Below the pieces are notes generated by a model that did not search any database, was not told where the DNA came from, and saw only the letters and a program-made list of their open reading frames with translations. Below, one piece after another: positions 20,289 to 63,362 of a stretch of 64,000 bases of DNA (position 1 is the stretch's first letter; each line of letters starts with the position of its first letter). The DNA comes from Trichoplax adhaerens (Eukaryota > Animalia > Placozoa), in assembly GCF_000150275.1 (NCBI RefSeq), contig NW_002060943.1:6316299-6380298 (forward strand), in the 5' to 3' direction. The position numbers and the translations under genes are program-made.

Positions 20289-21300
<1,012 letters not shown>

Positions 21301-27502: not shown

Positions 27503-27516
27503 GTTTCCATAGCAAC
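27503..27516. promoter_or_regulatory. RFX X-box upstream of NWD paralog A
   Basis: GTTTCCATAGCAAC matches GTTNCYATRGNAAC; about 1.6 kb upstream of ATG 29110; candidate 5'UTR donors at 27833 and 28709. Confidence 0.6.
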
Positions 27517-29109
27517 TAATTTAAATTAACAATCTCCCCTCAATTCCTATGGCTTTCTATCCCGTATTATGATACCCAATACTAAAATCATTCTATTGGC
27601 TGTTGTTAGATAAAGTTGAGCAGTTGAATTTGTATAGATTAATTAACGATCAATTGAAAAAGAATGAGTTAAAGGAAAATATATGTCAGGAAATATAATA
27701 CTAAAACCGAACAATAAATTTGGACAGTCAATTTCGGACACTTTTTCTACATTAGTACAGAAATATCCTGAATAGTTTAAAATTAGTTGCTTTTATAGTG
27801 GCTATTATGATGGGCTAAAAGTGTAAACAATAGGTACGCGGATACTTTCTTCACTCTTTTGCCTTTTATAAGTACCGCATAGTATATGTGTAACAGAAGG
27901 AACTACCAGATGAAAATGAACGTATAGTATGGACATTATTCTTCATGAATTTAGTATGAATAAAGAAATTTTCGATATTGTTCTTGCAGTAATTGTAATG
28001 AAGCAATTGGCTATAGACAAGAATTCATCATACAATCTATTGTTCTACTTAATATTGATTTGTCCCTATTTAAGAATATTATACACAGTACGAACAGATA
28101 TTAGTAGATTTACTCTTTAGTGATATTCAGACCAATATTTTTATTAAAATATTCTATTCAATTAAGGTTACACTGATCTGAATGTCAGTTTGGATGGAAA
28201 ATTAATCGTCGCTTATGCACTGAATTAAACTAGATACTGCGTCAAAGAAAATCACGAAAACATTACGGTAAAGAAGATCGATATATTTAATGCAACTATG
28301 TATGAAATGGGTATAATATTTTGGCTATTAACTATACTGAAGTAATGGATAATTCAAGCGAGAAATCGATGATAAATTTCGAATAAATTCTCACTATTTT
28401 GTTGACAATGTAATTGTATATTAATATTCTATTTACTGTATAATATTCTAGTTAGTAGTCTCAGTCAGTCGAGCTTTCATGATTAGACTTTATCAGCTTT
28501 TATTCCTGTCGATTATGATGATTGCTCCTCCTTCTGCTTATTCCTTGTTCTCATTCTTTTTTATCTTCAAGACATTTCATAACTAACTGTGTACAAGTGT
28601 AGAGAAGGCAAGATTTAGAAAATTCAATATTTTTATGATTTTTTTCATTTTCATCGACGATTCTTATTATCAATCTATGCTGATTTGTATTAGCATCATT
28701 CTAAACAAGTATGTAATATTAATTGGTCTGACTAACACACTTTTATTGAAAGTCTAAAATACCATTATTGGTCTTGATTTCAATGCGATCACACGTTTTT
28801 AAGTTGATATTTATAGTACAGTAATAACTTGCATTATTATCCATCGTTTTATAATCGTCATTCATGGTAATTTAGAAAAAAGATACTGAAGAAAAATGTT
28901 GCCGTTAATTTTATTAATGTGTAGGAAATAATCTTTAAAAAGAGCTATTTGGCGAATAATATAAAATGTGAGTAGATTAAGATTCAATTAATTGATTGAT
29001 CTAGAAAAAATTAAAATGATGAGAGTTTGAATGTTACTCAATTTTTAAGATTAGCAGTAGAATTTTGGAATTTGTGGAAAGTGTCCAGGCGTAAACAACG
29101 ATCTTACCA

Positions 29110-32100
29110 ATGGAGGAAGCAGAACAAAGACTACTTACTGGCAAATTGGTTAATTTACCAGTACAAAAGTCAAGAGTGATCCGAATTTATGTTGTTTCTA
29201 CATCGACAGGTAAATTATCATCTGATCGTCCATTTCACTTTTTTATGTTACAGCATTCACCCGTTCCTAGATCTATCATTCTTTCAATTTTTTTATTACT
29301 TTAATTATACACAAGTTCAATCCTAACAATCTTAACTATAGAACAGCTTCTATTTGCAGTTGTTAACAAAATTTCTATCCTTTACCCTTAGCACCTTTTG
29401 CTACCTTTTTGTTTGCGCATACTGACCACGAATCAAACTAATTTTAACTGGTTATTATGATACTGAAATTAGACAAGAGAGCATCTTTCCATGTAAACTG
29501 TACAGTATGTAAAAAGAGAGTTATAAATTGTATGCATCATGGACATTATCAATTTAAAGATAGCGATATACGGATAGGTAAAAAGCAAGTCACTCAAAGG
29601 AAGAAAGAAGTAGATGTAGATATTAATATATTGCTCAACCTTTATGCATACTGTAATGACGGTCTATAGAAACCAACCTTAGCAACACAGTAAAGTTATA
29701 GTCGGAAAAGAATGTTCAAGAAAACAAAGTCTGTTATCAACTATTCTGATCTTGTATGAAACTTAGTTGTAGTTATAGTTTATTAAAATAGGATAATTCC
29801 TAAATTGGTGACTTGTTTCCAATGTATTTTACAGATACTATCAAGGAACGGGAACAACTTGTGCAAGATATTTATCCTAAATTACGTAGTTATTGTCGCC
29901 ATCGTTATGATATTGATTTTCAAGCTATTGATACGAGGATGGATCATATCTACCATCGCTGCTATGATGATCATTATTTACAAGAATTATTACTCCATGA
30001 AATTCGATGCAGTCGACAATCCATGATAGGATCTTATTTTGTGGTAAGTTATCATTTGGTAACAATCCATCCCCTTAAGTCATTCCTTCCCTATCCAATT
30101 GATAATTTCCTTTTTATGTAATCGACTATAAAATAACCTTATGGTTTACCTAGCTTGACTATCACTATTTTATTCTTATCGGGTGGAAGTTAGTCAAAAT
30201 TATCATACATATTCCTGGTTCATTTTATTGACTGATCACAATTTTGGCACAAAATTGACACAATACATTCATATTTCGGGATGATATCTGATTGCATGAT
30301 TTTATTTTTTAAATAGTCCAACTTCATCGTTTTTGTTATCTTATAATCATGATAACTTGAAGTTCTATTATTATCCAAGTGGATTTTTATTAATCATGTA
30401 AATACCAGTTTGACTCTAATTATACTTGCCTTATTGGCAAAAAATCTTTCATCTTTCTTCCGCATCCTTATAAATCAATACCTTCTAAGATCAATTAGTC
30501 TACATCATTTATTATCATGCAGGCTTGTTTTCAGCATTTTACTTTTCAAATGCATGAGCTCCTATTACTATATTCTCTCTATAATAAATTCGTCATACTA
30601 GTGTGGGTAGATTTTCTTTCTTCAACTTCTAGACAAGACATTCTTAGAGCTATTGGTCATTTTTTTCTTAACTATTGTCCAAATATCCAAAGCTAGACAA
30701 TGTGCTATGAATGCTAAAGTATAAGTTTTCAATTATATTTTTATTTAAAATCAATTTTCTCATCAAAGTAAAAGATGATTACTATTAGTTATTTAATGTT
30801 TAATTTCTGTCCATTCCAATTTTTATTTATCCTTTTTATTTAAGGTATTTTGAATGCGTGAAAGGCAATCTAAGGGTACATGTCGTGATCGCCCATAAAT
30901 TATTTGAGGAGAGTTGCTTTAAGATTAGGGTACCTCTGGTTTATGTACTTATAAGCCAGTACTTTTTAAATTGATAGAATAAGAAAGAGAAACTAGTCGA
31001 ATCGAAAATTTTATCGTTAGTCAATAGAATTATAGTATTTTACGAGGTATTTAAGGTTAACAGAAATAAAGCATGTGGATAGTATTCAATGCGGATATTA
31101 TTGTATCCGTGCCATTACGAGTAAATAGCGCCTTTGGATGAGGTGATGAGATGGATAAACTGACAGGTTACTGAATATAAAAGGAATAAAATTATCGATT
31201 TGTTACAAGTATTTACGCAAAGTATTAAAATTTAGTGAATTTCTCTTTTACCTAAGACCATAAATATAACTCTATCTGACCTATCATTAATTAACATAAA
31301 GGGTCGCATGTTTTAGGTTATTTTATTAATTGAAAAAGCATACCGTATCTAACATTGTTTCAAGATTCAGTAGAAATCTGTATTTATTTATTAGTAGTTA
31401 GGAATTTAGCGCTATTACGGTAATACGATCCTGTAACTTACAGGTTTAAAAATTTGCTTACATTACAGCGTTTACTATTAGCTTTAGGGTTGACTTAGGA
31501 TCGAGTAAATATGCTACCGTAATCTTATTTATATTAATTATGCCATGTTTATATATATGACTTAAATCTTTAAATATTACAAGATTGCACTCGTGAAACA
31601 CAAAAATATTACATTAAGGAACGTAGTATTACTGTTATAACAAGATCCATTAATTTTAGAGATTGCAAGGATTATAAAGTTATGAAAGTAGTTAAGGGAC
31701 CATAAGTTTCTAACCGCATAGGGCATTAAATATGTTTCCTTTTATGGTACCACATTAGCATAGCAATAGACTAAGTAAGACCATAAATTTTCCGTATTCA
31801 ATGCCATAATTGATTTGTATATCTTCATATTGTGAAATCAAAGAAAGATTTTTCGAGTATGATTTTTTACTTAGAATCATCATATACCGTAGCTCGAGAG
31901 CTAAACGAGAAAAAACCAAAAAGGAAAATAAGTTTACAAATGTAAGAAAGAACTTATTTTCTCGAGTAAACGTATATGCCCAAATCGCGATATAAATTGC
32001 TGAATTGTTTAATTCAATATCGGACAGATGCACCAAGATATAAGTGACGGTAAATTAACAAAATCTCTACTAGCAAAATGTATAGATTTCGATAGCGCTA

Positions 32101-35100
32101 TTATCTCACTCTGACCATCAAACAATATTCGTTAGATATTGATGGACCCATGCCATGGAATTTTATAGGTATAGAGATATTTTAGCAGTATAGGGATAGT
32201 TCTAAATTTGTAACGAATAGATACACAAGTTATAGCTGGTAGTGTAGAAATATGTTAGATCGATTAAATGATCCATGCTTTCTACAATAATCATGAATTA
32301 CTTTGCACATTTGCAAATACAGCGAATCATGATTTGTATGGCGTATCAGGATTACAGCGATCAAAAACTAATATTGGCCAAACATCTAAATTATTTTCAT
32401 ATTATCAAATTTCTAACCTAAAAAATTTTTGATTGCTAATAGAAAAATAGCAAATAGATAAATAAACATTTCTAAAATATTGAAGATAGAAAATCGATTA
32501 AAACATGAAATATTAAATCATCTTAATAACTGTATTTAGGAGTATAAAATCAAATATTGGTAATACGAAGTATAGTAAATGAAAAACATACAATGACAAC
32601 TTTTCCATGGTTTGATTCATATATGAATTAGAAAATAAAAAGAGCTTCATTTATATTATTGATGAATACTGATCTACATATTCTAGAAGATCAAAAGATT
32701 GTTGTTACCGTAGCGGTAAAAATTATTATTATATAATGAACATGCATTACCGGACGCTGATCAGATCAACTAGATAGGAAATAATGAAAATTTATTTAGG
32801 ATTTCCAGAAGCTACTAGCTAATTTATTAATTTGCTTCGGTAACCTAATAGAAAGCCTTATACAGGCGATAAAAGAATATTGTTTTGCTTTAATAGACAA
32901 ATGCAGTAAAAATATGTTACGGTCAATATGTGTTTCCCCACAATAGCTGTATACAGTATCTCCAATATTTCAATTATTTACTAGCATGGCATACATCTAT
33001 GGAAGAGTCTGCAAATTATTGGGTTTTGCCAACATGCTGCCAATGTTTTAGCGGCCAATTACAGTAGTTAAACTTGCTGTCATGGCGACGGTCTATTCTT
33101 TTGCTACTTAGTGCTCGTATCATTGTTTTATCTGGAATATAACTCTAAGGACCTGTCATAAGAAGATTCATAATAATAAAATGCTGCTAGTCAGATATAC
33201 CCGTCAAGACGGCTGCGAACTGTGCCGTTGTAGCCATTTTCTCAATACAATAACTACAAATTATTAGTACCTTCCTTAATGATACCATCAGGACGATAAC
33301 CAGACAACTACTGTAAACATTATATTTTTGTCAACAATACGCATGTTAATTGAAATATCTTTGATACTGGCATATCGTGCTGAAGCCCTAATTTAGTATA
33401 AAATCATAATTTGTCGTTCTCGAAAGGCAACACAATGATTTTGGCTTATTTTAGCCATATTATCAAGCTAATATCTCCAATATTAGAGTATCGATAATTT
33501 TATGATATAGTCATGAAAATGATTGAATTATAATAGCCCAAGCTTTTAATGATTGGGAATCATACTCCATTGCATCCTTCAAACCGTTCGTTTATGTCAC
33601 CGTGTCTGCATATTGTTTTATATTTAGTAAGTTTCGGGCCATTACTATAAATTATGGCACTGCACAGATGAAAATTGAACCGACTTTTATAGATTTTAGC
33701 GTAGATCTATTGCTAGTTATGATTGCGCCTATCAAAAAGCCTATAAATGGTTATGCTGTGGTCATGAAATCGTTACATCTTAGAGTAGATTAAAGAATTG
33801 GTATCAGCTTTATTATAGATCTGAGGTGTAAAGGCATCGCAGGATCGAATAAAACTTTACTAAAAAAAATAAAGTAGATTAGAGCAATGTTAGCAGTTAT
33901 AAGTTTCAAAGCCTGCTCTCAGTTATTAATATTACGGAGCCTATCGCTAATAAAGTATCACCTATACGTCTAAATAATTCATTAAGGAAGTAGATTGATA
34001 CACACCCATATATATCAGAAAGATCAATTGATTGTAAGTCTACATCAAACTTTAAACTTGTGTCGTACCATAACAGGGTTAAGGCTACTGAAGATCTATC
34101 TGTCAGTATCCACAGAGCTTTTTTATTTCATAGGCAAGATCTAATGATATATTTAGTAATTCGAAGGTGATTCGTAAAAAACGTTCCTGCACGATTCCCA
34201 AAATTGTTGGAGACTGCTAGAAACCACGGTAGTTTCTTTTTTCTTTCTTGGTGTAGCGATACAGGTTAAAGTTATTCTGAAAAGTTAGGTGCCTTGATCC
34301 CCTGAAGTACGTTGAATTATTTGATAAGAAAGAATGACATTGCGCAATGATATGGCTAAAATATGTCTGCATAAATTTAAAATTCTTATTTTCCATTACT
34401 GATATTCATCTGATAAAGAACTTGTATATCATCCTATTTTAAATTCTGAGGATTTAAATTTAGCTATTCAGTTGTAAATATAGACTCAGCATTTGATCTA
34501 TTTATGATTTAAATCAGCTGTTGGGTTTCCATTTTTGTGAAAGTTTAATAATCTTTTTCAAACTGTATTTGCTTATGTAAGCAGAGATATTCAAAACTGT
34601 AAATAGCTTCGGATAAATAACATGAATTATAAATTTCCAATAATAGCTATAGATAGTCTTGATTTATGTGCATACATTATGATTAATCCTCTATCTGATG
34701 TTATATCCGCTAAGCAAATGATCTATGGTAGATTGCCTCCATTTTGTATTGCAGTCCATTGTAGTCAATAATAGTTTTGAGTAACTATTTTTTTCTATTT
34801 CAACTGATGAAGACATTTTAGTTATTATTTTATTCATATGATAAAAAGTCCAAAATTAGGCTTTCCTGCGAAATCTTAATCAAATTAGCAAGATTCTACT
34901 TAATTTAGACTAATAGATCATTGCTAGCTCTTTAATCGATATCAAAATTAATTAACCTCCATTTTTGTAAACCCAAAATTACTTTATTTTTGTAGGCTCT
35001 ATTAGGACAAAAATATGGCTATTCTCCATTACCAAACCAGATATCGGGCTTCTGCTTTAGATTAATACGTGAATGTTTAATAAATAATGATAAACCAGTA

Positions 35101-38100
35101 GAATCATTAGATCAATGGTTTAAAGAAGATACAAATGCAGTTCCATCGGTTTACGTTTTGCAATCTATATCATCTTGCTTAAAAAATTACAATAATTTGG
35201 AAGCAAAAGTAGAATTACAAGCTGAAGATGCGACTACCTGGTTGGAAATATGTCGGAAGCTTCAGAAGTTGTTATGGTTTGCAGTTGATCGACTAATAGC
35301 AACCGAAAAAATAACTCCTGAAGATGGACTTAAATTGAAAATATCAAGTAAGATTAACATTTTCTTGCTATTCCGCTATTTTATATAATAATTAAGAGCT
35401 ATGATGATTAGACTATGATATTTAGAGCTACTCGTTCCCCGAATAATATTCAGAGTTACTATCATCAATAGATGATATTTAGAAAGTATGATGAGTTAGA
35501 TCATCTTTCAGCTCCTTTAACATTGTTAGCTTTACATACGTTCCTATAAACATGCACATTTTTTCGCAATAATATGTATAATTAGGACTAGATCAAGAGA
35601 TTACTTGTGGGATTCTTGATGCAGATAAAGAGTTCATCAATGAAAATTGCCTAGGAATGATTAGGACATTTGCTAATGTAGAGTCTATTTCTAATGACGA
35701 TGCTATTATGGCTTATTTCGATATCGACAAAGAAAAGCAAGAAATTGATGAAAGAGCTAATCAGTTACTTTGCAAGTTACGTGATGATAAGCTACTTGAA
35801 AAGCTAGATCAACAACAAATATCACAATTTACGATCGATTGGCAAGCAGATGGTATCAATCCAGAACAGTATCAGCAACACTTTGATTATATACAGCAGT
35901 TTTGCTTGAAATTTTATAAAAGTATAAAAGGCATGATTGATAAAACGATGATGAACATTGGCGATCATGTCATTGATAGTAATCCATTATATCAAGAAAT
36001 TTTGCATCATTTACATTTCTGTCTAAAACAAACACGTACATTTTATGGCCGACAGAAAGAATTAGCTACTGTTCAAGATTATCTTCACCAAGTCTTAACG
36101 AAGCCATCGCCGTCATTACCGAAAAATAGGAGCAGCCCATTGGTTATTCTGGGTCCTGCTGGCTCTGGCAAGACAGCGCTAATTGCAAAATGTTTCGAAT
36201 GGTCCAGTAAAAATGTAACTGCAGCTGATATTATAGTACGATTTTTAGGACGCACCGTGGATAGCTTAACTGTATGCAAAACATTGACATCATTGTGCCA
36301 ACAAATTGGCCAATTATATGACCAATCACCGGATGATATACCTAAGCACAATGCAAAATTAGTCATCTATTTTCTCCGTCTATTAACCTTTGCCAATCGT
36401 CGTAAGCCATTAATTATACTGCTAGATGGACTTGATGAATTACCTTTTAACGAAACAGATGATCATCATTTATCCTGGCTACCGAAACAACTACCACCTT
36501 ATGTGGCTATGATAATCTCTGTTCAGGATGATGCCAATCATCATCAACAATTAAAAGCGATAAAGAATGCATTTCCTATTAATTCTTTTTATATTGAATT
36601 ACAGCCTTTAGCTATAGATACAGCTTTACAAATTGTTGATGATTGGCTATACGTTAAATCCAGGACGTTAACATCTCAACAGCGACAACTAATTTCCAGT
36701 GCTATTCTACGATGTAGCTTGCCTTTATTTATTAAATTAATTTTTAATCAAGCCATCCAGTGGCATTCTTATGACTCCATTTCTCAAGCTGATTTGCCCT
36801 TTGATACTGCATCAGCGATTCATAAATTATTTGATCGTCTCGAAATGATACATGGTAAAGCGTTATTTTCTCGTACAGCTATTTACATTACCTCAACACG
36901 ATATGGCTTAACTGAAAATGAAATACAAGACCTATTATCGTGTGATCACCAAGTTATGGAGGAGATCCATCGATATCAGCCTGATCAAGCTATTATAGCT
37001 GTTCCAGCATTGCTTTGGCTACGTTTAAAACATGATTTAAATGACTATGTTCTTGAACATGAAATTAACGGTTTAACAGTAATGCGTTGGTACCATCAAC
37101 AATTTATTGAAGTTGTTAGGCAGCGTTATCTAAGTAATGACCAAATACAGGAAGAAATCCACAGTCAATGTGCTAATTACTATATTGGTAAAGGATTAAT
37201 GAGCTTAACTAAAGGATCATACTATAGTATCGCAGATTATAATCAACATCATCAGCATTCTATTCTGTCACAGGATGCTAACGATGATTGCAGCTCTCAA
37301 AATCGCGGTATTAATAGTGATCGCTTACAACTACAACCTATGATTTATCATGTTCAAACCGAGTCCAAACAAAATCGCAAAATACGCTATAATTTACGCA
37401 AATTAAATGAATTACCATATCATTTAATTCATAGTAATCGACTTAGTGAAGTTAAAGAAAGGCTATTTTGCTTTTATCCATGGTTAATTACTAAATTACA
37501 GGCATTATCTTTACCCGCAGTATTAGGTGATTTTGAATTATTACTTAGTAAAACACACGATATTGAAATTAAAATAATTTATGATGCTATGCGATTATCC
37601 TATCAGACGCTTGATCAAGATGCATTTAGTTTGGCAGCTGAATTAATTGGTCAATTGTCAACATTAGCTAGTAATGAATATCAATATTTGCAATTATTGA
37701 TTGAATCGGCAGAAGAGATTGGAGCTCAACACTCACCCCTCTTACCAGTAACATCTTGCTTATTTCCACCTGGTGGTGTCCTACGTTATACATTACATGA
37801 TTGTAAAGGTGAAATATTATGCTTAGAAACAACATCGAATTTTCAGTATATTCTAGCTGGATCAACTGATCATCTAGTGCGTGTTTGGAATGTAACCACT
37901 GGTGAGCTTATCCATACGTTAGACAAGCATACCAGTGCAGTACACGGTGTTCATGTTACTTCTGATTGTCGAATTATCCTCTCCTATACCTATAATATTG
38001 ATGTAATTGCTAATCATGAAGTCTTAGCTTGGAATTTACAAACTGGCGAGTATCTATATAATTTACGTGGACATAGTGGTGGACCGTGCCCGATCATATC

Positions 38101-49482: not shown

Positions 49483-49500
49483 TGGTTACTATAGTAACCA
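49483..49500. promoter_or_regulatory. Palindromic RFX X-box upstream of NWD paralog B
   Basis: Perfect 18-bp palindrome TGGTTACTATAGTAACCA with core GTTACTATAGTAAC; 1.5 kb upstream of ATG 50998; candidate 5'UTR donor TAG|GTAAAG near 49770 and acceptor at 50850. Confidence 0.6.
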
Positions 49501-50419: not shown

Positions 50420-50441
50420 GAGAGAGAGAGAGAGAGAGAGA
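50420..50441. repeat. (GA)11 microsatellite
   Basis: gagagagagagagagagagaga read directly, in the probable 5'UTR intron of paralog B. Confidence 0.9.
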
Positions 50442-50997
50442 TTGAAGGATGCAATGTTTTTTTAAATGACGATTGTTTTGCTCGTGTAAATTATAACGAT
50501 TTTGCTTGTAATTGTCAACTTTTTCTTGTTGATTTTATTTAATTTTCTATGCTAGAATCCAATTTATTAACATATTCAACTTCCTTAGCTTATACTGTTA
50601 CATTAGAAATAGAAAGGTAGAATCTATTACATTTGATTGCTTTTTCTCTCTAATCTGATGTCTTCATGTCCTTATATTTATTGTTATCTGTATCAAACAA
50701 CAAAATCTAGTAGCATCATTTTGTCTGCTCTATAGCTATTACCGTTAGTGATTAGTAGCCTATTAAATTCTCTCCTTGACTTTCTTTTATATTTTTAATC
50801 TAATATGTGATCTGGTTATAGCTTAATCATATTTTAAAAATTCGATTTAGGTCAATTGTGCCAATCATTGATCAATTTTAAGAACAATTTTAAGGGATTT
50901 GCCGTGGATTGGCTACTTATTGGCAATCTATTCTTGCTACAGCAATCATTCAAGTCATTTTGATTGGGCTATTGATCGATTCTCATCATTAATAACT

Positions 50998-53900
50998 ATG
51001 GAATCTAATGATGATATTATTCAGTCTATTCTATCCGGTAATATGATCAATCTCCCATCCAAAAGATCTCAAACTGTACGAGCGTTTATTAGCTCTACTT
51101 TTACTGGTAAGGTAGAATTTTGCTGCTATCAATCATCGATTTTAGCATTAACTGTATCCAATTCTAGAGTATGTTACAAAAAAACTTCATTGAAATTTCA
51201 ACGTCAAGTTGAATTGCTGTGATATTTTAACTTCAAAAAGTTAGTTGCTTTCGTATATTTTTCGGTCTGATTAAATTAAGAATTTTTGCATTAATACTCT
51301 AATTTAAGTTTAAGTTACGTACACTATAAAAAATCATAACAAAGATGAATTGATGCAATAGGGGATTCCTTGACACATTTAGTTGAAAAGTATATTTTCA
51401 TTGTCGTATTAATTGCTCGTAGAGTATTCCATCAACTCCCACTCAGTGGTTTGATTTTTTTTATCCCCAGTGGTTGATAAAAGATTTCTGAAGCTATAAT
51501 TTGGCTCTAGATTGCATCTAAATAGTAATATTTCTGTTCTTATGATACCTGAGATATTCATAATATCAAGACTAAAAAATTATCCAAAGTAGATTTTAAA
51601 TTACACTAATTTCATACAAATCTATTTCTTGAACTCTCGCATTCAGTCCGTTACCATCATGAAATTTTGTTAATGAAACTCAACATTCGTCAAACTTTAC
51701 TAATGCTCGATTCTGAATTTATTTTGATCTATATTTGCCATTTGATGTCATAAATAATTTTTCTTTCATTATTGATCAATGCAGACATGACTTTAACAGT
51801 TGTTTTTCAAAGTATTTCTAACAGATTGATGCTCTTCTTGCATCTATAGTAGTTTTATTTCAACTGTTTAAATCTCATTCCCAATACCTTTTCAATAAAT
51901 TCTTACTCATAGTCTACGAATACAATAAATTCTATTATTTAAATTAAAATTTAGACACAAAACTAGAACGCAATGCCATCATGAAGGATATCTACTCAAG
52001 ACTTAAAGAATACTGTCGAAGTCGTCATGGATTAGATTTTCAATTAGTTGATATGAGATGGGGAGTTCGTGATGAAGCAACCGATGATCATATTACAACC
52101 GAATTATGCCTAAAAGAAATTGAACTATGCCAGAAGATCTCTATTGGGCCTAATTTTGTGGTAAGTCAAGGATTTGTATTGCAGTACGGTATCTGACAGA
52201 TACGCTTTTATGCTATTACAATTCAATATGGCGCATAGTTCCTCAACCACAGACTGAAAAAGTATTCTCATCCACTATTATCAAAGTCGCAGTGTCGATT
52301 AGAATGAGGATCGATTAACACAGCTATTAATCTTCCACAGATAGCAATATAATGTACTACTATCTTCGTTCACATGACGATGTCAACTTTTCTTGACCTT
52401 CTTCTTACTACTTCCGCTTCGAGAATAATACGTACAAAGACAAGTAAGACAGTTTAACTATATCGCTGTGCTTTCAAATTGAACAAGCCCCCAAGCAGTT
52501 CTTGAGTATTAATATTAAAGTAGCAAGATAAGTATCATCAATGTTAGTGATTTACTTTACATAGAATTTATAAGAAAATTATTTACTAATTACGTTTTGC
52601 ATTTTTGGCATGATTTTTATACAATTTAAGTTGCAATAACGACAGGGTTAATTTTAGGTAGTTTTATTCATTTAAATCGCTCTGTGTACTCCCTTTAGCC
52701 TAATTTTAATGAATATTGCAAGAATTGGTTGATATATTCGCTACTACATTTTCATGTTTAATTAAACTTTATTTATTTACGAGAACGCTTAGCCTAGTAG
52801 TTATAATGTCGTGGATAGGTGGATAAAAGAGAGATAGAGACCTTCACTAAGTTATTTTTAATTGGATCAACTAAGCATAAGTACCGTACCCTATAATTTC
52901 ATCGATGCATTGAATTAGTCTAGACCATTTTTTAGTTCTTGAATCTTTCTTTAGCCATGTTTACCTTAACAGAAATTATTATAATTTGTCGACAGTTAGG
53001 GTAGGGTTAGGCGAAAATTGTCGATCAAAAATGTTTTAGCCAGAATCGTTCTAATACCAGCGATATATAAACAGTTCTTTTGGCTTTTAGTCTTCGTTTT
53101 TATACGACTATTCTAGCATCAGTAATTATAATTTTTGTTGATATGTAGAATTGAGTTCGATCACATTCTTCGCTATGAAATAATTTAAATAGGCTGGAAC
53201 TTCTACTGAGGGTATAATTACATTTCTTTGGTAAAAGTTGCTTAAGGTTAACCTTCATTTTCGATTATTATTATTGGAAATTGGGCACTTATTTTAAGAT
53301 TTATAGGCATCATCAACGCATTTCGGCAATTTTATTTCATTTTTAGTCTTGGATAAATTTTACCAACTAATCTTAATTGTATGGATTTTGTGACTCGTAA
53401 TCTTCAGCTATCATCTTTTTTACGGCAATCTTTTCCCTGGATATAAATAATATTAAGTTCAGTGGTAGCTGTAATTTCACATAACGGAATTCATGAATAC
53501 ATCTAGCAACTGCAGATAGTAACCTTCCCTTCATTATTAATCTAGTTAGCGTCTGTTTAGCCTAGTGTTTCCAATTTTAATGATTTAGAGAATATACTTA
53601 GACACTACCTTTCGTTTGAAGCCTTCCTTTGAGCTTTGATATTTTGCCGTCATGACGATATCGTAATCCTTGTAGTGAACATGTAGAAAGATATTGTGGT
53701 TACTAATTTTTTTCTTTTCATGCGTATTTTTATATCTCGGGCTCGGGTTAGTCATTACAATTTTATTAATGCAAATGTACATTTCGACTGTTTGCCTTAG
53801 TTTTAATTTTTTCTTTTTTAGTATGTATTCAAAATCATATCTATATATTAAATGAATTAAGACACAAAATCATTGCTGAATTATCGTTGGATATATTTTA

Positions 53901-56900
53901 GTTGATTGAGTTAGCAATGGTTTTAATTTTATTGGTGCATCGAAATTATTTAGTCAGTTGGATGCCTTTTAAGTCGTTATTAAAATTTTGATAGACGATT
54001 AATTAGTGGAATGTACTAGTCATTTTATTGATTTTTACGATCTTGTAATTTCATCTATACATACATTGATAATTTATAAACCCTGAACGCGACTGGATGC
54101 AGAATAGAGTTAGTAAGTTTATTTCTTTTCTGATTGTATTTATAAAGAATTTTGGCACAGTAGATATATTTATATCTGCCAATTCTCTTAGAATTCATAT
54201 AGTTCAGGAAGTACTATATATGGTGAGATTTATTATTGTAAAGTGTAAAGTGCTTCCTGTTTATTGGGTAGACAGTGGTTGGTCTACCATTTTGATTTCT
54301 TGAATAGATCGTATAGTTTAATTCCGACAGTTGTAATAATATTAAGTTGCTGTTAGCCTTCTAAGATAGGAAGGAATGACTTTAAAGAATTATTTGTATA
54401 ACTGAAGGATGGGTAAAATGTACCTCGTAAGTTCTTTAGAACGCTCATGAATAATATTTGCACCGTTGTATAAGTTAAAATTGCTGAAATAGCAAACTAG
54501 ACTGCAGTTTATATACCTTCTGTGATATGATCGTCATTTTCTGCAATTTCTGTAACCATTGTATACCTCTCATTAAAAAAGCAACAATTTAATGATGGGT
54601 GTGATTGTAACATGCACATGGTTAGAATTAAATGATCGGGTGGGATTATAATAGATAGCAGATTTATTTTTATTTCTTATACTCGTAGGGTTGCTGCATT
54701 GTATGCTGTATTAGTTTAGCATTAATAGCTACTAAAAATTTACGTAGTTAGTTACGCAAATTAAAAGTTAACTTAGATATATAAGATTTCAATAGCGAAA
54801 ATAAAAGCTACCGCGGAAGACTATTTCATTTCAATTGCATCACGTTGTAAATTCCATGCGTGTTCATTAACAATTTAAGATCTACTATAGACAATAGGGT
54901 AAAGGAAAAATTTTCTTTAATAGATTTTATTTGTTTTAAATATTACTAGCCATAGTGGCTATTATTTCATCGAAAAGTTATCGCGCATTTATACAATTTG
55001 ACAACTACGACTTTATAAGTACGCGCAGAAGGAAATAAGTGTTTGATAATGTTCGCCAATGATAAATACTTTTGATTTATTACGATAATCAAGCTAAAGT
55101 AAATGTAACTTAGTTTATTTCAAGATTTTTACATTACCTACTGTATTTAATCCTAGGCCATCAATTAATCAGAAACTAGTAACCAGAAGTAGTTCCCGTC
55201 TAACTAAGCTTACAAAATTGATATTTTAACCTACAGTAAAGACTAAATAACATAATCTTAAAAAGTTAAATTTATAGATCAATTGTATCATTTAAAGAGG
55301 GTGCTATTTCCGATTTATGAATAAAAACTATCTATTACTTTGTAGGTTACCCTGATCTTGAGATATTACTAGAATTAGCTTGGTTAGCCTTTATATTCAA
55401 TATCTATATTTGATATACAGTAAGAAGGAAGTAAATTTCCTTTTTTATGCAGCAACCAAGAGCGTTTACTAGTGTGACAGTGTTATACACTGTATTAGAG
55501 TAGAAATATCTATGTTAGGATAATTCTGTTAGCCTATCCTTATTTAGTTAACTTCTAATTTGGATATACTGTGTTTTAATATAGCACTGACTTTTAATGA
55601 CAGTGACACCTATACACATACTTAAATTAATAGCCATAATAGGGAAAGCAAATTATTTACTTACAACTCGAATCATTGTGATTGTAACTTACTTATGGTA
55701 GATTGTAAATTATCTTGGAAATGTTCTGTGATAGGACATATCGTAATCTGACTATTCTGTATTAGTCATCAGATGTCTATGTTCGTAAATACTATTGTAT
55801 ACACTAAGGAAGCAGGAGCTAAATTAATATCTAATTCAGTAAATGATTCCAAAGTTAATCGTACTAACTATGACTCCTGAACTATTGAGGAAGAGTATAT
55901 AAATGCAGTATATCGTGTAATAAAGTCGATTCTTAAACTTAGTATTTAACGTAAAATACGAAGCGTCTAAGTCATTGTGTAGTCTGCTAGTAGAGTAAAA
56001 GTGTTTTTGATAGTGCAGATATCGTTCCTTGATACGTCGTTCAAAGAATTAACTTATTGATCGTACATTACATTATCTAGTTGCAAAGCTGTTTTGTGAC
56101 AACTAGTAACTAAACTTCAAAGGCCAAATTAAAATATGCTGACGAGTTTGATGCCTCAAAATTATTTCCTGCTTCATTACTATGCAAATTCTGATTTATT
56201 TAATACTAAGTCAGCTTTCTTTATAATTTATAGTAGTCGACATGATAAATATTCGTGTTTTCGGTCCTTTAAAGGCAACATCGAGTCTCTAATTTTTAAA
56301 TTGCTTTACTTTCACCGAATCGATTAATTTGAGGAATAATCAGGTTTTCAACCTTGATAGCCAACATTTAATGATTAATTACTATTCTAGCTGATTATTT
56401 TTACGAATACGTAAGTGATAATTAAAATTTTACACTTTAACACGAAAATAATATATTAACGTAAATTCATTTTGAAGAGAGAAACGCTTGATTTTATTTT
56501 ACCCGAAAAAATAACCCAGTTTTCCCGATTTAATTAAGAAAAGCAACACATATAAACTAAAAATCGATTTTACACAAAAATTAGCAAGGAATAGAACCTT
56601 AATACTTGATCAAAAATAAGTACTATATTCAAACTATTTTTCTATTTTCTATTACATAATCTAAATGATGTTAAACTCATCCTGGATTAATATATCTGAA
56701 AATATTGAAAGTTACCGAAAATAATCTCAAGTATTTTCTTCTTTATGATATACGAGTATATGAGGATATTGTGGAATTAATTGGCACGGGCGCCATTTTG
56801 TTGTTTTAATACGGCTTATGATATATTTAGTAACAATGCCTCTTTATTAGTGATTAATTATCATTTATAAGAAGTTATGATAGTTCACTAAAATCAACAA

Positions 56901-59900
56901 TTTTGCTTAAAAATAGACATTAATAGGACAAAAATATGGTTATCGTCCATTTCCTACTCGTGTATTATTAGAACATTTTGACTGTCTTCGCCAATCTATG
57001 TTACTACATCAAGAATCCGTCCAGCTTCTCGATGAATGGTTTAAGAAGGATGATAATGCAGTACCACCAGTTTATATTTTGCAACCTATTTCAAGTCAAT
57101 TACTTCATTATAATGACCCTTCAGAGCCGGAATTACAAGCTAATGATCGAAAAGCATGGTGGAATATCTATTCTCAGTTGCAATCATCCTTAAATAGAGC
57201 AGCTAAAAAATTGAAATTGATAGGAAAAATGGATCAAAGAGTTGCTGAACAGTTTGAAATATCAGGTGAGCCATAACTAGTTATATGGCATATCTTCATT
57301 AAAATTTATATTCTCTGACTAAAAATCTATATCCATATTGATGCTAGAATAATTAATTGCCGAAAATCACAGAATACCTTAATTTCTAATATAAGAAAGC
57401 TAGTCATTACGCCAATTTCTATATTTTAAATCATTTACAAGCTATAGCTACACGAAGATTTGAGATATTGATGAGATAAAATGGCATTTAGTTATGATAT
57501 CGAATTATATGAGGTATAACGATTTGATTATACAGTATTAAAGAGTTTGCTAAATTTGAGCTTCTAAATTATCTATTGTAATGCTTCTAAATTTTTCGAG
57601 ATTCACAACAGTTAAATAATTGTTTACATCCCTTTTAATTTAAGCAATTGAGAATACTTTAGTTACATTGTTGATTCAAATTTATAATATGATTTTTAAG
57701 CTATTACTGAATCTGCATTTGCCTGATAGTATATATTTCTTCTGTGTTCAAATTGCTGCCTGAATTTGGTTACTTTAACACATTAGTTGCATGAATGTTG
57801 GGCCATATTAAATTCATTATCGTAAATTTATGCTAATTTTCAAAATTACTTCTTATTCGTTTATTCCATAGTAGTTTATAATATTAAAGATAAAATAATG
57901 TAATCCCATTTGTTTATGAAACCATTGCGTAAAATCAATTAATTATTGCGGTAACTCTAGGTTATAGCAAGAATCATAAAGAACTAATCTCCACTAATAT
58001 AAATAAATACAGATATAAATAAATATTAAATTGGATATTACAGTATATTAAAATTCGCTCTTTGATATCACTTAGCTCATTTAGTATAACTAATTTATAT
58101 GAAATCATTTTGATTATTGCAGTTACGCATCGAGAAATTAGGCAAGGTATTTTAGATGTGGAAAATTGCACAAATGATCAATGTATTTGTTTTGTCCGCA
58201 AAATTTCAAATCTTGAAGAAGATTTATCGAACGATAATGTCCCTGCATATATTGATTTAATACATGGGGAAAACGAGATTAATACAGAAGCTACCGATTT
58301 ACTTTCATCACTTTTAAATGATCAAATTAAAGAGAAATTAAATGAATCACAAATATTTTATTTTCAGTTGGATTGGAGTCCAACTGGTATTGATCCTGAT
58401 AATAATGAAGATCATGAAGATTATATACGAGAATTTTGTGAAAAATTTTATTTAGTCATGATCAGAATGATTGACAAAGGCATAGAGAAAAATCAGCAAT
58501 TGCCATTTGACGATTCATTATATGAAGAAGTATTAGGACATTTATCATTTTGCCAACAACAATGTCAATCCTTTCACGGTCGCCGCGATATTTTACAAGT
58601 TGTTGAAAGTTATATTGACAAGGGCTGTAGAGACCATGATGAATCTAATGAAACATTAAAGAAATCTCCATTGGTTGTTTATGGTGAATCTGGCAGTGGA
58701 AAAACATCTATTATGGCTAAATGTGCCCAATATACTAAAAATAAATATCCCAGTGCAAATTTACTGCTACGTTTTCTAGGTACATCGCCCGATAGCTCAT
58801 CTATCCGTAAATTATTAGCATCACTATGCATTCAACTAAGTCGGTTATATGATCAAGATTTAAATTGCATTCCTAACGAGTTTAGCCAATTAATTGGTTA
58901 TTTTTCCACTTTAGTTAATCGAATACCTAAGGATAAACCGCTTGTAATCATATTAGATTCGTTGGATCAATTGCTACCTTCAGACGGTGCCCATCGAATG
59001 TCATGGATTCCAAGAATATTGCCACATCATGTTTCTATTTTATTATCTACTTTACCTTCAGAATATAACTGCTTGAATATTTTAAAGAAAGTATTGCCTC
59101 ATGATAGTCAATACCTTGAAATTCAATCCTTACCCGTTGATGTTAGCCAAGAAATTTTAACGGATTGGTTAGCGTCTAATTCAAGAAAAATAAACGATCA
59201 CCAAATGGATGTTGTCAGACGAGCAATCCAGAGTTGCAGTCTACCATTATATTTAAAGTTGGTTTTCGATCAAACAGTAGCCTGGCATTCATATGATAAA
59301 ATTAGTAGTAAACATCTTCCGTCTACAATTCCATTAATGATTGATGCCTTACTAGATCGACTAGAACGGATGCATGGAAAAGTGTTAGTATCGCGAGCCT
59401 TAGCGTACATTACTGCTACTAAATCAGGCTTAACTGAGCCTGAATTAGAAGACTTACTGTCTTGCGACGATCTTGTCTTACAAGATGTCTACCAATATTG
59501 GTTGCCGCCTGTACGCCGTATTCCACCTTTACTGTGGACTAGAATTAGGAATGATATTAATGAATATCTTGTCGAGCGAGAAGCCGATGGCAGTCAAGTT
59601 ATATATTGGTATCATAGGCAATTTACTGAAGTTGTACGTCGACGTTACTTAGATAATGATAGAATCAAGAAAGAAATTCATAGTTTGTGCGCTGATTACT
59701 ACATAGGTAAATGGGCTAACGTTAATAAACCTTTCGAATATACACCTCAACAAGTTGAATTATTCCGATTAGATAGTCATTATGGTGAAGCGGATCGTAA
59801 AGTACCTAAACAACCATTACTATTTGAATTTGAAGGCGATGTCAATGCTAGTAAAAAGAAATATAATAGAAGAAAATTAAGTGAATTGCCCTACCATTTA

Positions 59901-62900
59901 ATTTATGCAAATAGGCTAGTAGAAGCCAAAAGAATCGTATTTTGCTCATATAACTGGCTATTGACTAAATTGAAAGCCACGTCGATCCAAGAAGTATTAA
60001 ATGATTTTGTTCTTGCCATGGAAATTCAACAAGATGTCGAACTGAAAACTGTTTATGATATGATTCGCATGTCAGCATCCACTATTATTCATGATCCTCG
60101 CGATCTTGCGCCAGAAATTGTTGGCCAACTTTGCGATTTAACAAGTAGCCAATTTCCATGTATACAAGAATTGGTGAATACCGCGCGAACTGAGGGTATT
60201 AAATCAGCGCCATTAATGCCCGTTCGGGGTTGCCTACCCTTACCTGGTGGTCCATTAAGATCGACATTAGAAGGCCATACTGATCAGGTTATCAGCCTAG
60301 CTGTATCTAGTAATGGCATTTTTCTTGCTACTGGTTCAGTTGATAAAAATATTCGCATATGGGATTTAAATAGTGGTAGTTTAGTTCATGTTCTAATTGG
60401 CCATTCAGAACCTATCCATCGTGTACATATTTCACCGGATAATCGTATGGTTATCGGCTATTCCTATATAGGTGAATTTATGAAAGTTAAATCTATCGTT
60501 GTATGGAATTTAGAATCAGGTAAACGCTTATATAATTTAAAAGGGCATACTGGCGGCCATTGCCCATTAGTATTAACTCATGATAGTCGTTATGCATTAT
60601 CAGCATGCCTTTATCGTTGGAAATTATGTAAGATGCTATCCATTCAAGCGCTTACAAATGCCGACAATTCCGGCGATGAAGACGAAGTAATTGATGAAAT
60701 TAGTGAAAATGAACAAACTCAAATGACAAATGATGATAGAGAGAGTAAAGATACGGAATTAAACGATCATACAACTCAAGATGATTCAGAAGGTAGTAAT
60801 CATGGCAGCATTAAAAATAGTAGTCATGAAACGATTAATCAATTAGATGATGATGATTATACGCAGCCTGATGATCAGGAAAAGCGCTACTATGAAAAGA
60901 AAAATTTTATTCTCTTGAAATGGGATTTAGAAACTGGTCATTTAGTTTATTGGATGGAAGCCCATACCGATGATGTCGAAGATATGGCCATTGCTACTGA
61001 CGATAGTTTTATTGTTACTTGTAGTCGTGATAAAACAGCAAAAGTATGGAGTTTAGAGACGCATGCTTGCTTAGTAACTATTATTGAGCCGCACTTAAAG
61101 GGAATTATGTCACGTTTATGCTTAACATCAGACAATCGCAATGTTCTTATAGAGGCATTACATCTTGGTGTTTATTCCATTGAAACTGGTGAACGATTAT
61201 GCGAGCTTGAAGATCCTAAATTTTCGGCAACTATTGAAAGCTTCTCCTTGTCCGAAGATAATCGATTATTATTATTAACCGACGTTGGCAATCATATCAA
61301 ATGTTTTAATGTCCAAACTGGTGAATTTATCAGTCGCATTGATGAGCAAGATGGTAAAAGTAAAATGCGACATGGTGGAATCATCCCAGGTACAACATAT
61401 GCCGCTGTAACCTTAGGAACGAAAGTGGCTAAAGTTTGGGATATGATCAGTGGTGATTTGGTAGCTACGTTAACTGGTCACACTAATCGTATTACAACCA
61501 GTCTTGTACTGGGCGATTTAGGGGAACCTTTACTAGTGACAGCATCAGAAGATCATACTGCTAAAATTTGGAATTTGTCCAATTTAAATTCATTACAGGA
61601 GGATAAGAAAACTGATTTCCATGAATCGAATGTTAATTTTGTACAAATTTCTAAAGATGGCTCTTATGTTGTCACAGGTTCACAGGATAAAAAGTTCAAG
61701 AAATGGGATATCGAAACAGGCAAATTAATTCAAGAAATGGAAGTATCTGTTGGTGTAATATATCAGTTGTACTTGATGCCTGATGGTAAGACAGCCTACG
61801 CATTTCCATTTCAAAAGTCGACAAGATTAACTTTTGATTTAGAAGAATTTAAATTAATTGAGACAAGTCTATTAAAAATGACACAAATTATGACAGCATG
61901 TCTATCTTATGATGGTCGCCATTTAATGGGAATAACTTATGATCAAGTTTTAAAAGTGTGGAATACACATGATTTTTCAATTGTATCTGAAATTAAAAAA
62001 TCGCATGTTACACATATTAAGTCGCTTAAATCCAATTACTTTTTGACCATGTATCGCTCTCAATTTTATGATGAAAGTGGTGATACTAAAGTTATTAAAG
62101 CCTGGAATTTTGATAAAAATGGTCAGACAATTAAATTATCAGGCCATGCTGGTCGTATCCAGTGCTTTACATTAACCGATGATGAACGCTATTTACTGAC
62201 TGGCGCAAATGACAACAGCGTCATCATTTGGGATTTATCCAATTTAACCATCTATGGCAAGCTATTAGGACATACTGAATCTGTTCAGTCCGTTGTAGTA
62301 ACATCGAAAGCACGCCTTGCTGCGAGTGGATCAAAGGATGCTACAGTTCGATTATGGGATTTCAGCTCAAATATATGCCGCTTAATACATACTTATCAGG
62401 GACATCAACATGTCGTTGATCATGTTTCATTTTCACCTAATAATACGTATATCATCTCCTTTTCATCAGAGGAGACTGTAGTAAAAGTGTGGAGTGTTGC
62501 AACAGAAAATTTAATTGGCGATTTCCACATGCATGCTAAAATGCATACTTATGACATTAATGATATGAATCGTAAATTGATAATTGGAACTAATGATGGC
62601 AGAGTAATCTTACTAAATATCTACGATTTATTTCGTAAGCGAGCTGGAACTAAGGTAGTAGGATGGAAAGATTTAAAGGTAAGAATAGGGAATGTAGAGC
62701 GAAAATATATCGTACTTTACAAGCAAAATACGTATTGGATTACATGTTTAATAACGAGACCTGGCAAAATAATCTTCTGTACATAAACTAATATCATTAT
62801 AGATCGTAAACAATTTTATTTTAAAGGTAGTCATGCTTGATGTTCCAATAATATCATTTATCAGATTACTAAATTTATCACAAACTTCTAAAATATGTCA

Positions 62901-63362
62901 TCATCTAAGTTTTGCTATTGGAAGTAATTGATGAGAATGCAATTTTTGTTTAAAGCGTAAGCGTTAACTAATTAAATAATTAAAAAAATTCATCATTACT
63001 CGTTATAAGTCAGTAAATTATCGGCATTACTAGCTTTTATTCAAATAATGCAATTACAGGTGAATATGATGTGATTAATGATTTAAATTTTGTACTCTCA
63101 ATAGGCTAAATCTAGACCTAAATTCAAATTGAGTAATCCTGAGAAGGAAAATGGAAATATTAAAGACTCAAATCACATTAATAATAATTTGGAAAATTCT
63201 AATGAAAACCTAGAAACTTCTGAAAGGCCTAGACTTGACTCTAAGTCTTCAACGAATAGTAGTAAAGGTATTTTACGCAACTCTATTACGACTCCACCGC
63301 CTGAAATTTTGCAGTACAATCCTCCAGAAGTTCGCGCATCTGCTTGCTGTGTAATTTCTTAA
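50998..63362 (+). CDS. NWD2-like: NACHT and WD40-repeat protein, paralog B (~1825 aa): DUF4062/TIR-like domain, NACHT, WD40 propellers, tail, CaaX. Exons: 50998-51106, 51955-52160, 56917-57265, 58123-62678, 63105-63362
   Basis: In-frame joins (5478 nt); VRAFISSTFTD..ERN..VDMRWG..CLKEI..LIGQKYGYRP; Walker A GESGSGKT (58683-58706); Walker B IILDSLDQL; RRIPPLLWTRIR; RKLSELPYHL; WD40 repeats; ends ASACCVIS*. Confidence 0.93.

Follow-up and report, generated by a model that had tools for sequence, protein, structure and literature searches.

A tandem array of NWD1/NWD2-type STAND genes in Trichoplax, with predicted CaaX tails and an X-box upstream of each copy

What do two large neighbouring genes in a 64-kb stretch of Trichoplax DNA (the window, meaning the whole stretch that was analysed) encode, and what do the tails of their products and the X-boxes upstream of them suggest about where such proteins act? 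An earlier note had described the genes as a tandem pair working together in ciliated cells. The reading we favour, and consider probable, is that they belong to an array of lipid-anchored STAND switches of the NWD1/NWD2 type, in which an X-box has been kept upstream of each copy.

Genes A (29110–42409) and B (50998–63362) both belong to the NWD1/NWD2 family and are intact, with several exons each. They lie head-to-tail, as the earlier note had recognised, on the + strand, and a third tandem paralog, gene C, starts approximately 3 kb beyond the window end. Each of A and B contains a giant exon within a long open reading frame (35657–40066 and 58062–62786, respectively), and the smaller exons were placed by tblastn with full-length homologs. 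The exon junctions of both genes are all GT-AG with the same intron phases (1, 0, 1), and the splice junctions of C are likewise canonical and phase-matched. In gene A, exon 1 (29110–29209) provides the ATG and the start of DUF4062 and ends in phase 1, exon 2 (29835–30043) encodes the DUF4062 core (tblastn to four homologs, E 1e-10 to 6e-12), and exon 3 (34996–35347) encodes the end of the domain and a linker, with an LLGQKYGY motif. Exon 4 (35586–40048) then carries the NACHT domain (Walker A GPAGSGKT), HTH_NWD1, a helical domain and WD40 propellers. Gene B comprises exon 1 (50998–51106; ATG to RAFISSTFT, phase 1), exon 2 (51955–52160; DUF4062/TIR-like core with VDMRWGV, tblastn about E 1e-29), exon 3 (56917–57265; DUF4062 end and linker) and exon 4 (58123–62654), which encodes NACHT (GESGSGKT), HTH_NWD1, APAF1_C-like helices and WD40 propellers. 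An alternative phase-0 donor for exon 4 of B is present after 62678. No further gene is visible in the interval that separates gene A from an ARF-like exon at 21.3 kb. Besides A, B and C the genome holds at least three unlinked family members, giving at least six family loci altogether. A and B are 41% identical at the amino-acid level, and the copies overall 41–60%.

The proteins encoded by A, B and C share a layout of DUF4062, NACHT, an NWD1-type winged helix, helical domains, at least two WD40 propellers and a disordered linker of 60–145 residues before the tail. The NACHT model PF05729 matches past its cut-off in all three (E 2e-13, 1.3e-10 and 3.3e-10 for A, B and C, respectively), and the GxxGSGKT and hhhhLD motifs are readable in the translations. 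HTH_NWD1 (PF25469) is found in each at E about 1e-15 and NWD2_C (PF23586) at E 9e-23 in A and 6e-21 in B, with matches to many further propeller models including those of the TEP1 propellers. The Pfam model NPHP3_N is hit by all three as well, and that of the APAF1_C helices gives a weak match. No single exon is long enough for DUF4062 to be detected with Pfam, and the domain was placed by homolog alignment: exons 1–3 of A and B align with the N-termini of PF13271-bearing homologs, and the solved structure of the TIR-like domain of TEP1 (PDB 11gz_A) is matched by exon 2 of B at E 6e-4. In a search for the counterpart of the catalytic glutamate of TEP1 (E1008), the profile of exon 3 matched nothing in the TEP1 chain. 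Purified human NWD1 and NWD2 displayed no NADase activity in vitro. The domain matches bear out the tripartite TIR-like/NACHT/WD40 architecture that had been read from the sequence; it is the published architecture of NWD1 and NWD2, and DUF4062 is the TIR-like NADase domain of NWD1, NWD2, NPHP3 and TEP1 (bioRxiv 10.64898/2026.05.01.722283; 2026 preprints).

The best homologs are NWD1-like and NWD2-like proteins (30–45% identity, query coverage up to 100%). In a FastTree phylogeny of 44 sequences, sampled without vertebrate NWD2, A, B and C form a single placozoan-specific clade (support 100) within the NWD2-side group; its sister is an echinoderm and hemichordate clade, and the two are jointly sister to the protostome NWD2 clade. 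Judged by its sequences, the array is a lineage-specific triplication of animal NWD1/NWD2 family STAND ATPases on the NWD2 side. Gene A has the longest branch in the tree (0.96; that of B is 0.47), and exon 2 of A reads DTRMDH in place of the family D-x-RWG motif. With the RWG motif lost and the longest branch, A is possibly a copy that has diverged or serves in regulation.

The C-termini of these proteins are encoded downstream of the giant exons. In gene A the path runs from a GTATGT donor at 40049 through exon 5 (41513–41863), a low-complexity linker of 117 open codons with phase 0 at both ends, to a last exon (42323–42409) that ends with SSCCIIF and a stop; in gene B the last exon (63105–63362) encodes a polar linker of 85 residues and ends with SACCVIS and a stop. 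On the inferred splicing, A, B and C are all predicted to terminate in Ser-x-Cys-Cys-aliphatic-aliphatic-X (CCIIF, CCVIS and CCVVM), and CIIF, CVIS and CVVM each have the fourth-last Cys, aliphatic a2 and permissive X (Phe in A, Ser in B) of a CaaX box. The double-cysteine endings noted previously for A and B are present in the gene models, but CaaX tails are not particular to that pair: gene C has one, and 109/190 homologs, ranging from cnidarians to platypus NWD1, end in C-x-x-x. Among those 109, Ser is found at -3 in 97 and I, L or V at a2 in 105, so that the typical family tail is Ser(-3)-x-x-Cys-a-[ILV]-X; several homologs without a CaaX tail begin Met-Gly. No link between NWD proteins and prenylation was found in the literature consulted, and the CaaX tail appears to be an old family-wide hallmark that is apparently undiscussed.

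High affinity for the prenyl-binding carrier PDE6delta is set by two positions counted from the farnesylated Cys, -3 with Ser and -1 with the hydrophobic Ile (PMC5512577). Vertebrate NWD1 tails (S-Q-I-C-x-I-V) carry both, and A, B and C have the Ser at -3 with Cys at -1. The Trichoplax genome encodes a PDE6D/UNC119 family. The Cys just before the predicted prenylated Cys suggests palmitoylation, for which reason a stable membrane anchor would fit A, B and C better than shuttling as PDE6D cargo.

X-box A (GTTTCCATAGCAAC) lies at 27503–27516, 1607 bp before the gene A ATG at 29110, and X-box B (GTTACTATAGTAAC), a perfect palindrome, at 49485–49498, 1513 bp before the gene B ATG at 50998 and followed, 51 bp from its first base, by a CCAAT box. 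At gene C a palindromic X-box is found 335 bp upstream of the ATG. The distances at A and B are far for a proximal promoter, barring a 5' non-coding exon. The two sites are the only matches to GTHNYYATRRNAAC within the 64 kb, and under the tight pattern GTTNCYATRGNAAC they compare with 0.01 expected (0/100 shuffles reach 2). For three sites in 39 kb the Poisson probability P(>=3) is 2e-5, or 7e-8 counting only the three 2-kb upstream regions. The X-boxes 1.5–1.6 kb upstream that the earlier note called strict are indeed present and non-random; they are strict only by a nematode-style consensus, and neither A nor B matches GTNRCC-NN-RGYAAC. Upstream of gene A there is also a degenerate second X-box-like element (GTTTAGATAGTAAC, 27453–27466; two mismatches to the tight pattern), which has an exact 13-nt block, ATAGTAACCATAT, in common with X-box B and its flank. 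When the upstream regions of A and B are compared, this block is the top match (13 nt, E 0.05), the remaining matches being short and at chance level, and the flanks of the X-boxes are otherwise unalignable. Since the X-box is kept while its flanks are unalignable and A and B have diverged to 41% identity, the motif appears to have been retained since old duplications. X-boxes upstream of NWD family genes have not previously been reported.

The X-boxes could still be matches that have no regulatory role at A, B and C, whether left over by chance, bound by another factor or serving an unannotated transcript, with the genes themselves ordinary NWD paralogs, an explanation that we regard as somewhat unlikely. 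It would accord with the distance of the A and B sites from their ATGs and with the loose consensus, which is not enriched genome-wide (1346 matches against 1753 for the control). In contrast, the tight class is enriched threefold (134 genome sites versus 45 for the control) and the canonical form GTTGCYATRGCAAC occurs 15 times versus none in the control. All three exact 14-mers are many times over-represented; among the first 50 matches listed there are at least four genome copies of the X-box A 14-mer and at least six of that of X-box B, where 0.64 and 1.4, respectively, would be expected genome-wide. Moreover, three of three tandem paralogs keep the site amid diverged surroundings. The ciliary-gene controls are weak and lean towards the absence of a role: the B9 genes, IFT46 and BBS5 lack an exact X-box over about 1.5 kb, and IFT57 has just a loose match, roughly 1 kb upstream. 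Tandem TPR genes on a different contig have tight X-boxes upstream too, and the motif is therefore not restricted to recognisable ciliary genes. Several genes with an RFX DNA-binding domain are encoded in the genome, and a ciliary link for A, B and C is plausible.

The absence of the motif from most homologs examined in other phyla also speaks for matches without a role. The Ptychodera, Lingula and Patella homologs and a Patiria NWD1-type gene yielded no X-box at their 5' ends, and neither did the DNA examined for the unlinked Trichoplax NWD paralogs. The Saccoglossus locus has a single palindrome; it falls within a gene, some 3 kb before the next paralog. The NWD cluster of the sea star Patiria, an ambiguous case, contains five palindromes (0.33 expected), three of them within the codons for LP[KR]Q. 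Fly CG10185 and worm qui-1 and T05C3.2 are absent from published X-box target lists.

Taking the array to consist of lipid-anchored switches, a working scheme can be proposed. The Cys four from the end would be prenylated, with farnesyl in B (CVIS) and C (CVVM) and with either farnesyl or geranylgeranyl in A (CIIF), while the adjoining Cys would probably carry a palmitoyl group, like that of yeast Ras2 (CCIIS). The lipid tail and flexible tether would hold the switch on a membrane. By analogy with APAF-1, a ligand on the propellers would release NACHT-driven oligomerisation, bringing the N-terminal TIR-like domains together. Expression would probably be under the palindromic X-box of each copy, bound by an RFX factor.

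A bolder version, which we consider improbable, holds that acting as a lipid-anchored switch at the ciliary or sensory membrane is the ancestral state of NWD STAND proteins. The Ser-x-hydrophobic-Cys-a-a-X tail would then be a PDE6delta-type sorting signal, of which vertebrate NWD1 has the exact INPP5E signature; a sister clade would have traded the tail for N-terminal myristoylation, NPHP3-like; the placozoan genes would belong to an RFX regulon; and the TIR-like domain would provide an NAD+-based signalling or cell-death output in cilia. Such an ancestry would explain why QUI-1, described as the worm ortholog of NWD1, works in chemosensory neurons that bear cilia (PMC8871372) and why CG10185, an Nwd1/2 ortholog, is listed as a gene of Johnston's organ, the fly ear (PMC7198581). 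Both observations also speak for the reading favoured here.

We also think it unlikely that the array is a diversifying set of innate-immune, non-self sensors, expanded under pathogen pressure, anchored at an entry surface and depleting NAD+ through their TIR-like domains, with cilia irrelevant. Lineage-specific tandem expansion within the family, the combination of STAND and TIR-like NADase architecture and the number of family loci in a small genome would all suit such sensors, as would the antiphage effector role of bacterial DUF4062 proteins and the proposal of TEP1 as an immune executioner by its authors. Yet the copies are old, given their divergence, unlike those of a young array with fast turnover, animal genetics points to sensory neurons for QUI-1 and neural progenitors for NWD1, and the inactivity of NWD1 and NWD2 as NADases in vitro runs counter to the proposed output.

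It is very unlikely that the CaaX endings are artefacts of exon choice and that the proteins stop where the giant exons read through to a stop codon (40066 and 62786): the modelled tail exons are short and of low complexity, but all three genes have canonical splice sites that agree in phase, an open frame of 117 codons is improbable by chance in DNA of 32% GC, and Ser-x-Cys-Cys-a-a-X recurs in A, B and C in agreement with the family-wide tail. The two-gene sensor/partner module of ciliated cells put forward in the earlier note has similarly little probability and was not upheld, for although A and B are adjacent on the same strand and the divergence of A is reminiscent of sensor/helper NLR pairs, there are three array members in one placozoan-specific clade, tandem NWD clusters in sea stars and Saccoglossus too mark tandem duplication as the family's growth mode, signs of co-regulation are limited to similar motifs and nothing points to an A–B partnership.

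NWD1, NWD2 and QUI-1 are conserved and linked to disease or behaviour, and the NADase fold of their N-terminal TIR-like domain was shown only in 2026. A conserved lipid anchor, be it CaaX or, in one clade, Met-Gly, would imply that NWD switches act on a membrane; the conserved Ser at -3 leads to a concrete PDE6delta carrier hypothesis and the placozoan X-boxes are a regulatory lead. If the link to cilia fails, the annotation of a three-gene NWD array and a family-level lipidation motif relevant to human NWD1 remain.

Among known systems, the NWD1/NWD2 family is the closest, sharing the DUF4062-NACHT-HTH_NWD1-WD40 order, the Ser-x-x-Cys-a-a-X tail and alignment at up to full coverage. A, B and C are nevertheless a placozoan-specific triplication and not one-to-one orthologs, with a second Cys directly before the CaaX Cys and with upstream X-boxes not found at most homologs examined. 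NPHP3 (nephrocystin-3) also places a DUF4062-type N-terminal domain beside a NACHT-type ATPase and is a lipid-anchored, ciliary protein, but it has TPR repeats where A, B and C have WD40, and its lipid is an N-terminal myristoyl group, with UNC119 as carrier, instead of a C-terminal prenyl group. TEP1 resembles the array in its TIR-like DUF4062, alignable with exon 2 of B, and in NACHT and propeller models; it differs in having TROVE and vWA modules, in sitting inside vaults and in being an active NADase, whereas NWD1 and NWD2 are inactive in vitro. INPP5E-type farnesylated PDE6delta cargo shares the CaaX tail with Ser at -3 but has Ile rather than Cys at -1, and a palmitoylated neighbouring Cys is expected to block carrier binding. 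Finally, APAF-1 and the fungal HET-E-type NACHT-WD40 proteins likewise combine a STAND ATPase with a C-terminal WD40 sensor and an N-terminal effector domain; their effector is CARD or HET instead of DUF4062, APAF-1 uses NB-ARC in place of NACHT, and neither type is known to have a lipid anchor.

The window lies in an assembly of 105.6 Mb in 1414 contigs at about 32% GC. The cores of A and B, two head-to-tail + strand genes, are giant open frames (35657–40066 and 58062–62786), and the smaller 5' exons of each were placed by tblastn with four full-length homologs. Together with a reading of the junctions, this gave + strand models for gene A (exons 29110–29209, 29835–30043, 34996–35347, 35586–40048, 41513–41863 and 42323–42409) and gene B (50998–51106, 51955–52160, 56917–57265, 58123–62654 and 63105–63362), the fourth exon of B having an alternative donor after 62678. 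Every intron of both models is bounded by GT-AG, the first three introns have the same phases (1, 0, 1) in A and B, and the tail exons are joined in phase 0. The exons were searched one by one and never merged into a full-length protein for search or fold. The second introns (30044–34995 in A and 52161–56916 in B) each measure around 4.8–5 kb, which is long for the compact Trichoplax genome.

In Pfam searches, A and B matched NACHT, HTH_NWD1, NPHP3_N, a helical domain like that of APAF-1 and many models of WD40 propellers, those of NWD2_C and TEP1 among them. Their closest database relatives, from echinoderms, hemichordates, molluscs, rotifers and cnidarians, are named NWD1-like or NWD2-like and align at 30–45% identity with coverage of up to the full query. 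Exon 2 of gene B gives a direct alignment to the TIR-like domain of TEP1 as solved in PDB 11gz_A (E 6e-4); an exon 3 profile compared with solved structures gave no TEP1 match and no placement for the catalytic residue column. The conserved D-x-RWG motif is replaced in A (DTRMDH) and kept as VDMRWGV in B and in a third paralog, C. The earlier note had read the two proteins as TIR-like/NACHT/WD40 receptors, and this is correct because DUF4062 is a TIR-like NADase fold common to human TEP1, NWD1, NWD2 and NPHP3 (2026 preprints); the arrangement is the published architecture of NWD1 and NWD2. Among the human DUF4062 proteins only TEP1 displayed NADase activity in vitro (2026 preprints). A and B are new members of the known NWD family.

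A whole-assembly search revealed that paralog C begins about 3 kb beyond the window end (L009:7018–9780 and L010:153–5158 in two stretches examined there; G000:C1414:6382968–6391456 on the same contig when its X-box is included). C has the same exon pattern as A and B and is approximately 60% identical to B, compared with 41% between A and B. There are at least three further, unlinked NWD-family loci (on contigs C1384 and C1410, and at 220 kb on C1414, where the matches contain stop codons). A midpoint-rooted FastTree of 44 sequences, with vertebrate NWD2 not among them, unites A, B and C with support of 100 in a single clade, whose sister is an echinoderm and hemichordate clade; the protostome NWD2 clade is sister to these two together, and NWD1 of vertebrates and amphioxus falls in a clade of its own. 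Tandem NWD clusters also occur in sea stars and Saccoglossus, such that tandem duplication is a habit of the family. The proposal that A and B work as a two-gene module is not supported given paralog C, the unlinked loci and the clusters in other phyla, and nothing marks the pair out as a functional unit. Between B and C there is a run of CTAACCCTAGCT-type repeats resembling telomere repeats (L009:4760–5030, equivalent to window positions of about 64.8–65.0 kb).

Gene A ends in SSCCIIF-stop, gene B in SACCVIS-stop and gene C in STCCVVM-stop, each preceded by a polar linker of 60–145 residues. Counting from the CaaX cysteine as 0, all three display Ser at -3, any residue at -2, Cys at -1, Cys at 0, two aliphatic residues and a variable final residue (X). 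Under established CaaX rules, Ser or Met at X points to farnesylation and Phe accepts either prenyl group; a Cys adjoining the prenylated one is a classic palmitoylation site, and yeast Ras2 ends similarly in CCIIS. Should gene A not be spliced at its GTATGT donor, the read-through frame (40049–40066) would end VCTCL-stop, itself CaaX-like, with nothing similar in B or C.

In a survey of 190 homologs recovered by homology searches, 109 have a C-x-x-x ending, from cnidarians to platypus NWD1, with Ser(-3) in 97/109 and Ile, Leu or Val at the second aliphatic position in 105/109. The family-wide C-terminal motif is Ser(-3)-x-x-Cys-a-[ILV]-X, as seen in NWD2 of molluscs, brachiopods and nemerteans (KSRACVIS), sea stars (KSKTCQVL), amphioxus NWD1 (KSHFCQIL), Caenorhabditis (KSHVCLVM), amphibians (S-Q-I-C-H-I-V) and platypus NWD1 (S-Q-I-C-M-I-V). 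The tail is missing from insect and rotifer homologs. Seven long tail-less homologs among the 190 start with Met-Gly-x-x-x-Ser, a myristoylation-type sequence; six of these are in the tree, all within a third clade, and include three cnidarian sequences, one hemichordate and one mussel. CaaX-like ORF ends near the unlinked Trichoplax paralogs could not be told apart from chance. The lipid tail that had been proposed for A and B is real at the level of sequence, ancient and, as judged from these endings, a hallmark of the NWD family rather than a peculiarity of A, B and C. Our literature search found no relevant paper pairing either NWD1 or NWD2 with prenylation or farnesylation, and the tail is apparently undiscussed in the searchable literature.

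The earlier note also placed a strict X-box, a palindromic RFX-type motif, upstream of each gene. Both sites were recovered by pattern scan (GTTTCCATAGCAAC at 27503 and GTTACTATAGTAAC at 49485; 1607 and 1513 bp before the ATG of A and B, respectively) and are the sole GTHNYYATRRNAAC matches within the window; both fail the GTNRCC-type consensus, and the description as strict applies only to the nematode-style one. Gene C has its own site, GTTGCTATAGTAAC, 335 bp before the ATG (L009:6670–6683). The mammalian-style pattern GTNRCCNNRGYAAC has zero matches in the window, and looser X-box patterns there occur at chance level. Genome-wide, with the same pattern read backwards as the control, loose GTHNYYATRRNAAC gave 1346 strand hits against 1753, tight palindromic GTTNCYATRGNAAC gave 134 sites against 45, and canonical GTTGCYATRGCAAC gave 15 against 0. 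For the exact 14-mers of A, B and C, the matches listed include at least 4, 6 and 9 copies, compared with genome-wide expectations of about 0.6, 1.4 and 1.35. The window holds 2 tight sites where 0.01 would be expected, and the Poisson probability of three within 39 kb is 2e-5.

The flanks of the three X-boxes are unrelated to one another, and the top match between the upstream regions of A and B is a 13-nt block (E 0.05) connecting a degenerate second A site (27453) with the B X-box. The motif has therefore persisted across old duplications, evidence in favour of a function. A CCAAT/ATTGG pentamer lies 14–92 bp downstream of each X-box, an arrangement noticed after the fact, with an estimated chance of about 0.01 for all three together. 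We regard the X-boxes as statistically credible candidate regulatory elements. A transposon or repeat origin was rejected on account of the unrelated flanks, as was service to another gene, since no other gene is visible in the intergenic stretches.

By eye, the window also contains Dicer-like gene fragments (242–3524, +; a 524-codon frame with two RNase III-type signatures), exons of a HEAT/ARM-like repeat protein (5900–13650, -) and the last exon of an ARF-type small GTPase (21103–21300, +, ending at 21300), with no convincing exon in the 7.8 kb from there to gene A. A GC-richer segment at 15238–16177 carries short tandem repeats of GTACTGTACAG-type units with periods of 7, 11, 17 and 20, and gene B has a (GA)n microsatellite upstream (50420–50445).

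In other phyla, the homologs of Ptychodera, Lingula and Patella, like the Patiria NWD1-type gene, lack the palindromic X-box at their 5' ends, and palindrome counts at these loci equal the shuffled expectation. At the Saccoglossus locus there is one palindrome, which falls within a gene and precedes the next paralog by about 3 kb. In the three-gene NWD cluster of Patiria there are 5 against 0.33 expected: two are intergenic (L055:8424 and L055:22118), and the other three (GTTRCCAARGCAAC; L055:6001, 10081 and 22837) sit inside exon 1, within codons for a conserved LP[KR]Q peptide, as does one in Acanthaster (L059:6075). Protein constraint may explain these exon 1 palindromes. The X-box is lacking at most of the homologous loci examined, and the X-boxes of A, B and C are probably lineage-specific.

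The Trichoplax genome has at least four loci encoding RFX DNA-binding domains. One such exon (G000:C1414:6422055–6422183) shares its strand with the NWD array and is found about 30 kb downstream of it, a nearness that is probably coincidence. The ciliary-gene positive controls were weak: within roughly 1.5 kb, three B9 (B9-C2) genes, IFT46 and BBS5 lack an exact X-box, and IFT57 supplied the only match among the controls, a loose X-box some 1 kb upstream of it. A Tektin model search found nothing, and ORFs beside the 15 canonical X-boxes gave a single weak SAXO5-like match, with the site 130 bp before the ORF. Tandem TPR genes on contig C1404 are preceded by tight X-boxes with a conserved flank, so the motif is not confined to recognisable ciliary genes. 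Four tight sites fall within 30 kb there (G000:C1404:943902–972668; L037:2903, L038:3548, L038:6279 and L039:6669); the L038 pair is identical over the flanks shown, the L037 site has a partly similar 3' flank, and one L038 site precedes a TPR-repeat gene by about 0.9 kb, in sequence that is duplicated across assembly gaps. The unlinked NWD paralogs lack an X-box in the stretches examined, and fly CG10185 and worm qui-1 and T05C3.2 are absent from published X-box lists. Most placozoan epithelial cells are ciliated, making expression in ciliated cells a poor discriminator in these animals. A ciliary role for A, B and C is a reasonable hypothesis. Supporting context comes from QUI-1, which functions in chemosensory neurons that are ciliated (PMC8871372), and from fly CG10185, a Johnston's-organ gene (PMC7198581).

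Ciliary delivery by PDE6delta offers a further comparison. The PDE6D/UNC119-type family has two loci in Trichoplax, and carriage of A, B and C by PDE6D would be a testable idea; the Cys at -1, if palmitoylated, would instead point to a stable membrane anchor. In INPP5E, Ser(-3) together with Ile(-1) produces a high-affinity PDE6delta cargo that is sorted to the cilium (Fansa et al. 2016; PMC5512577). Vertebrate NWD1 tails carry this exact pair, whereas the placozoan tails share the Ser(-3) of INPP5E but have Cys at -1.
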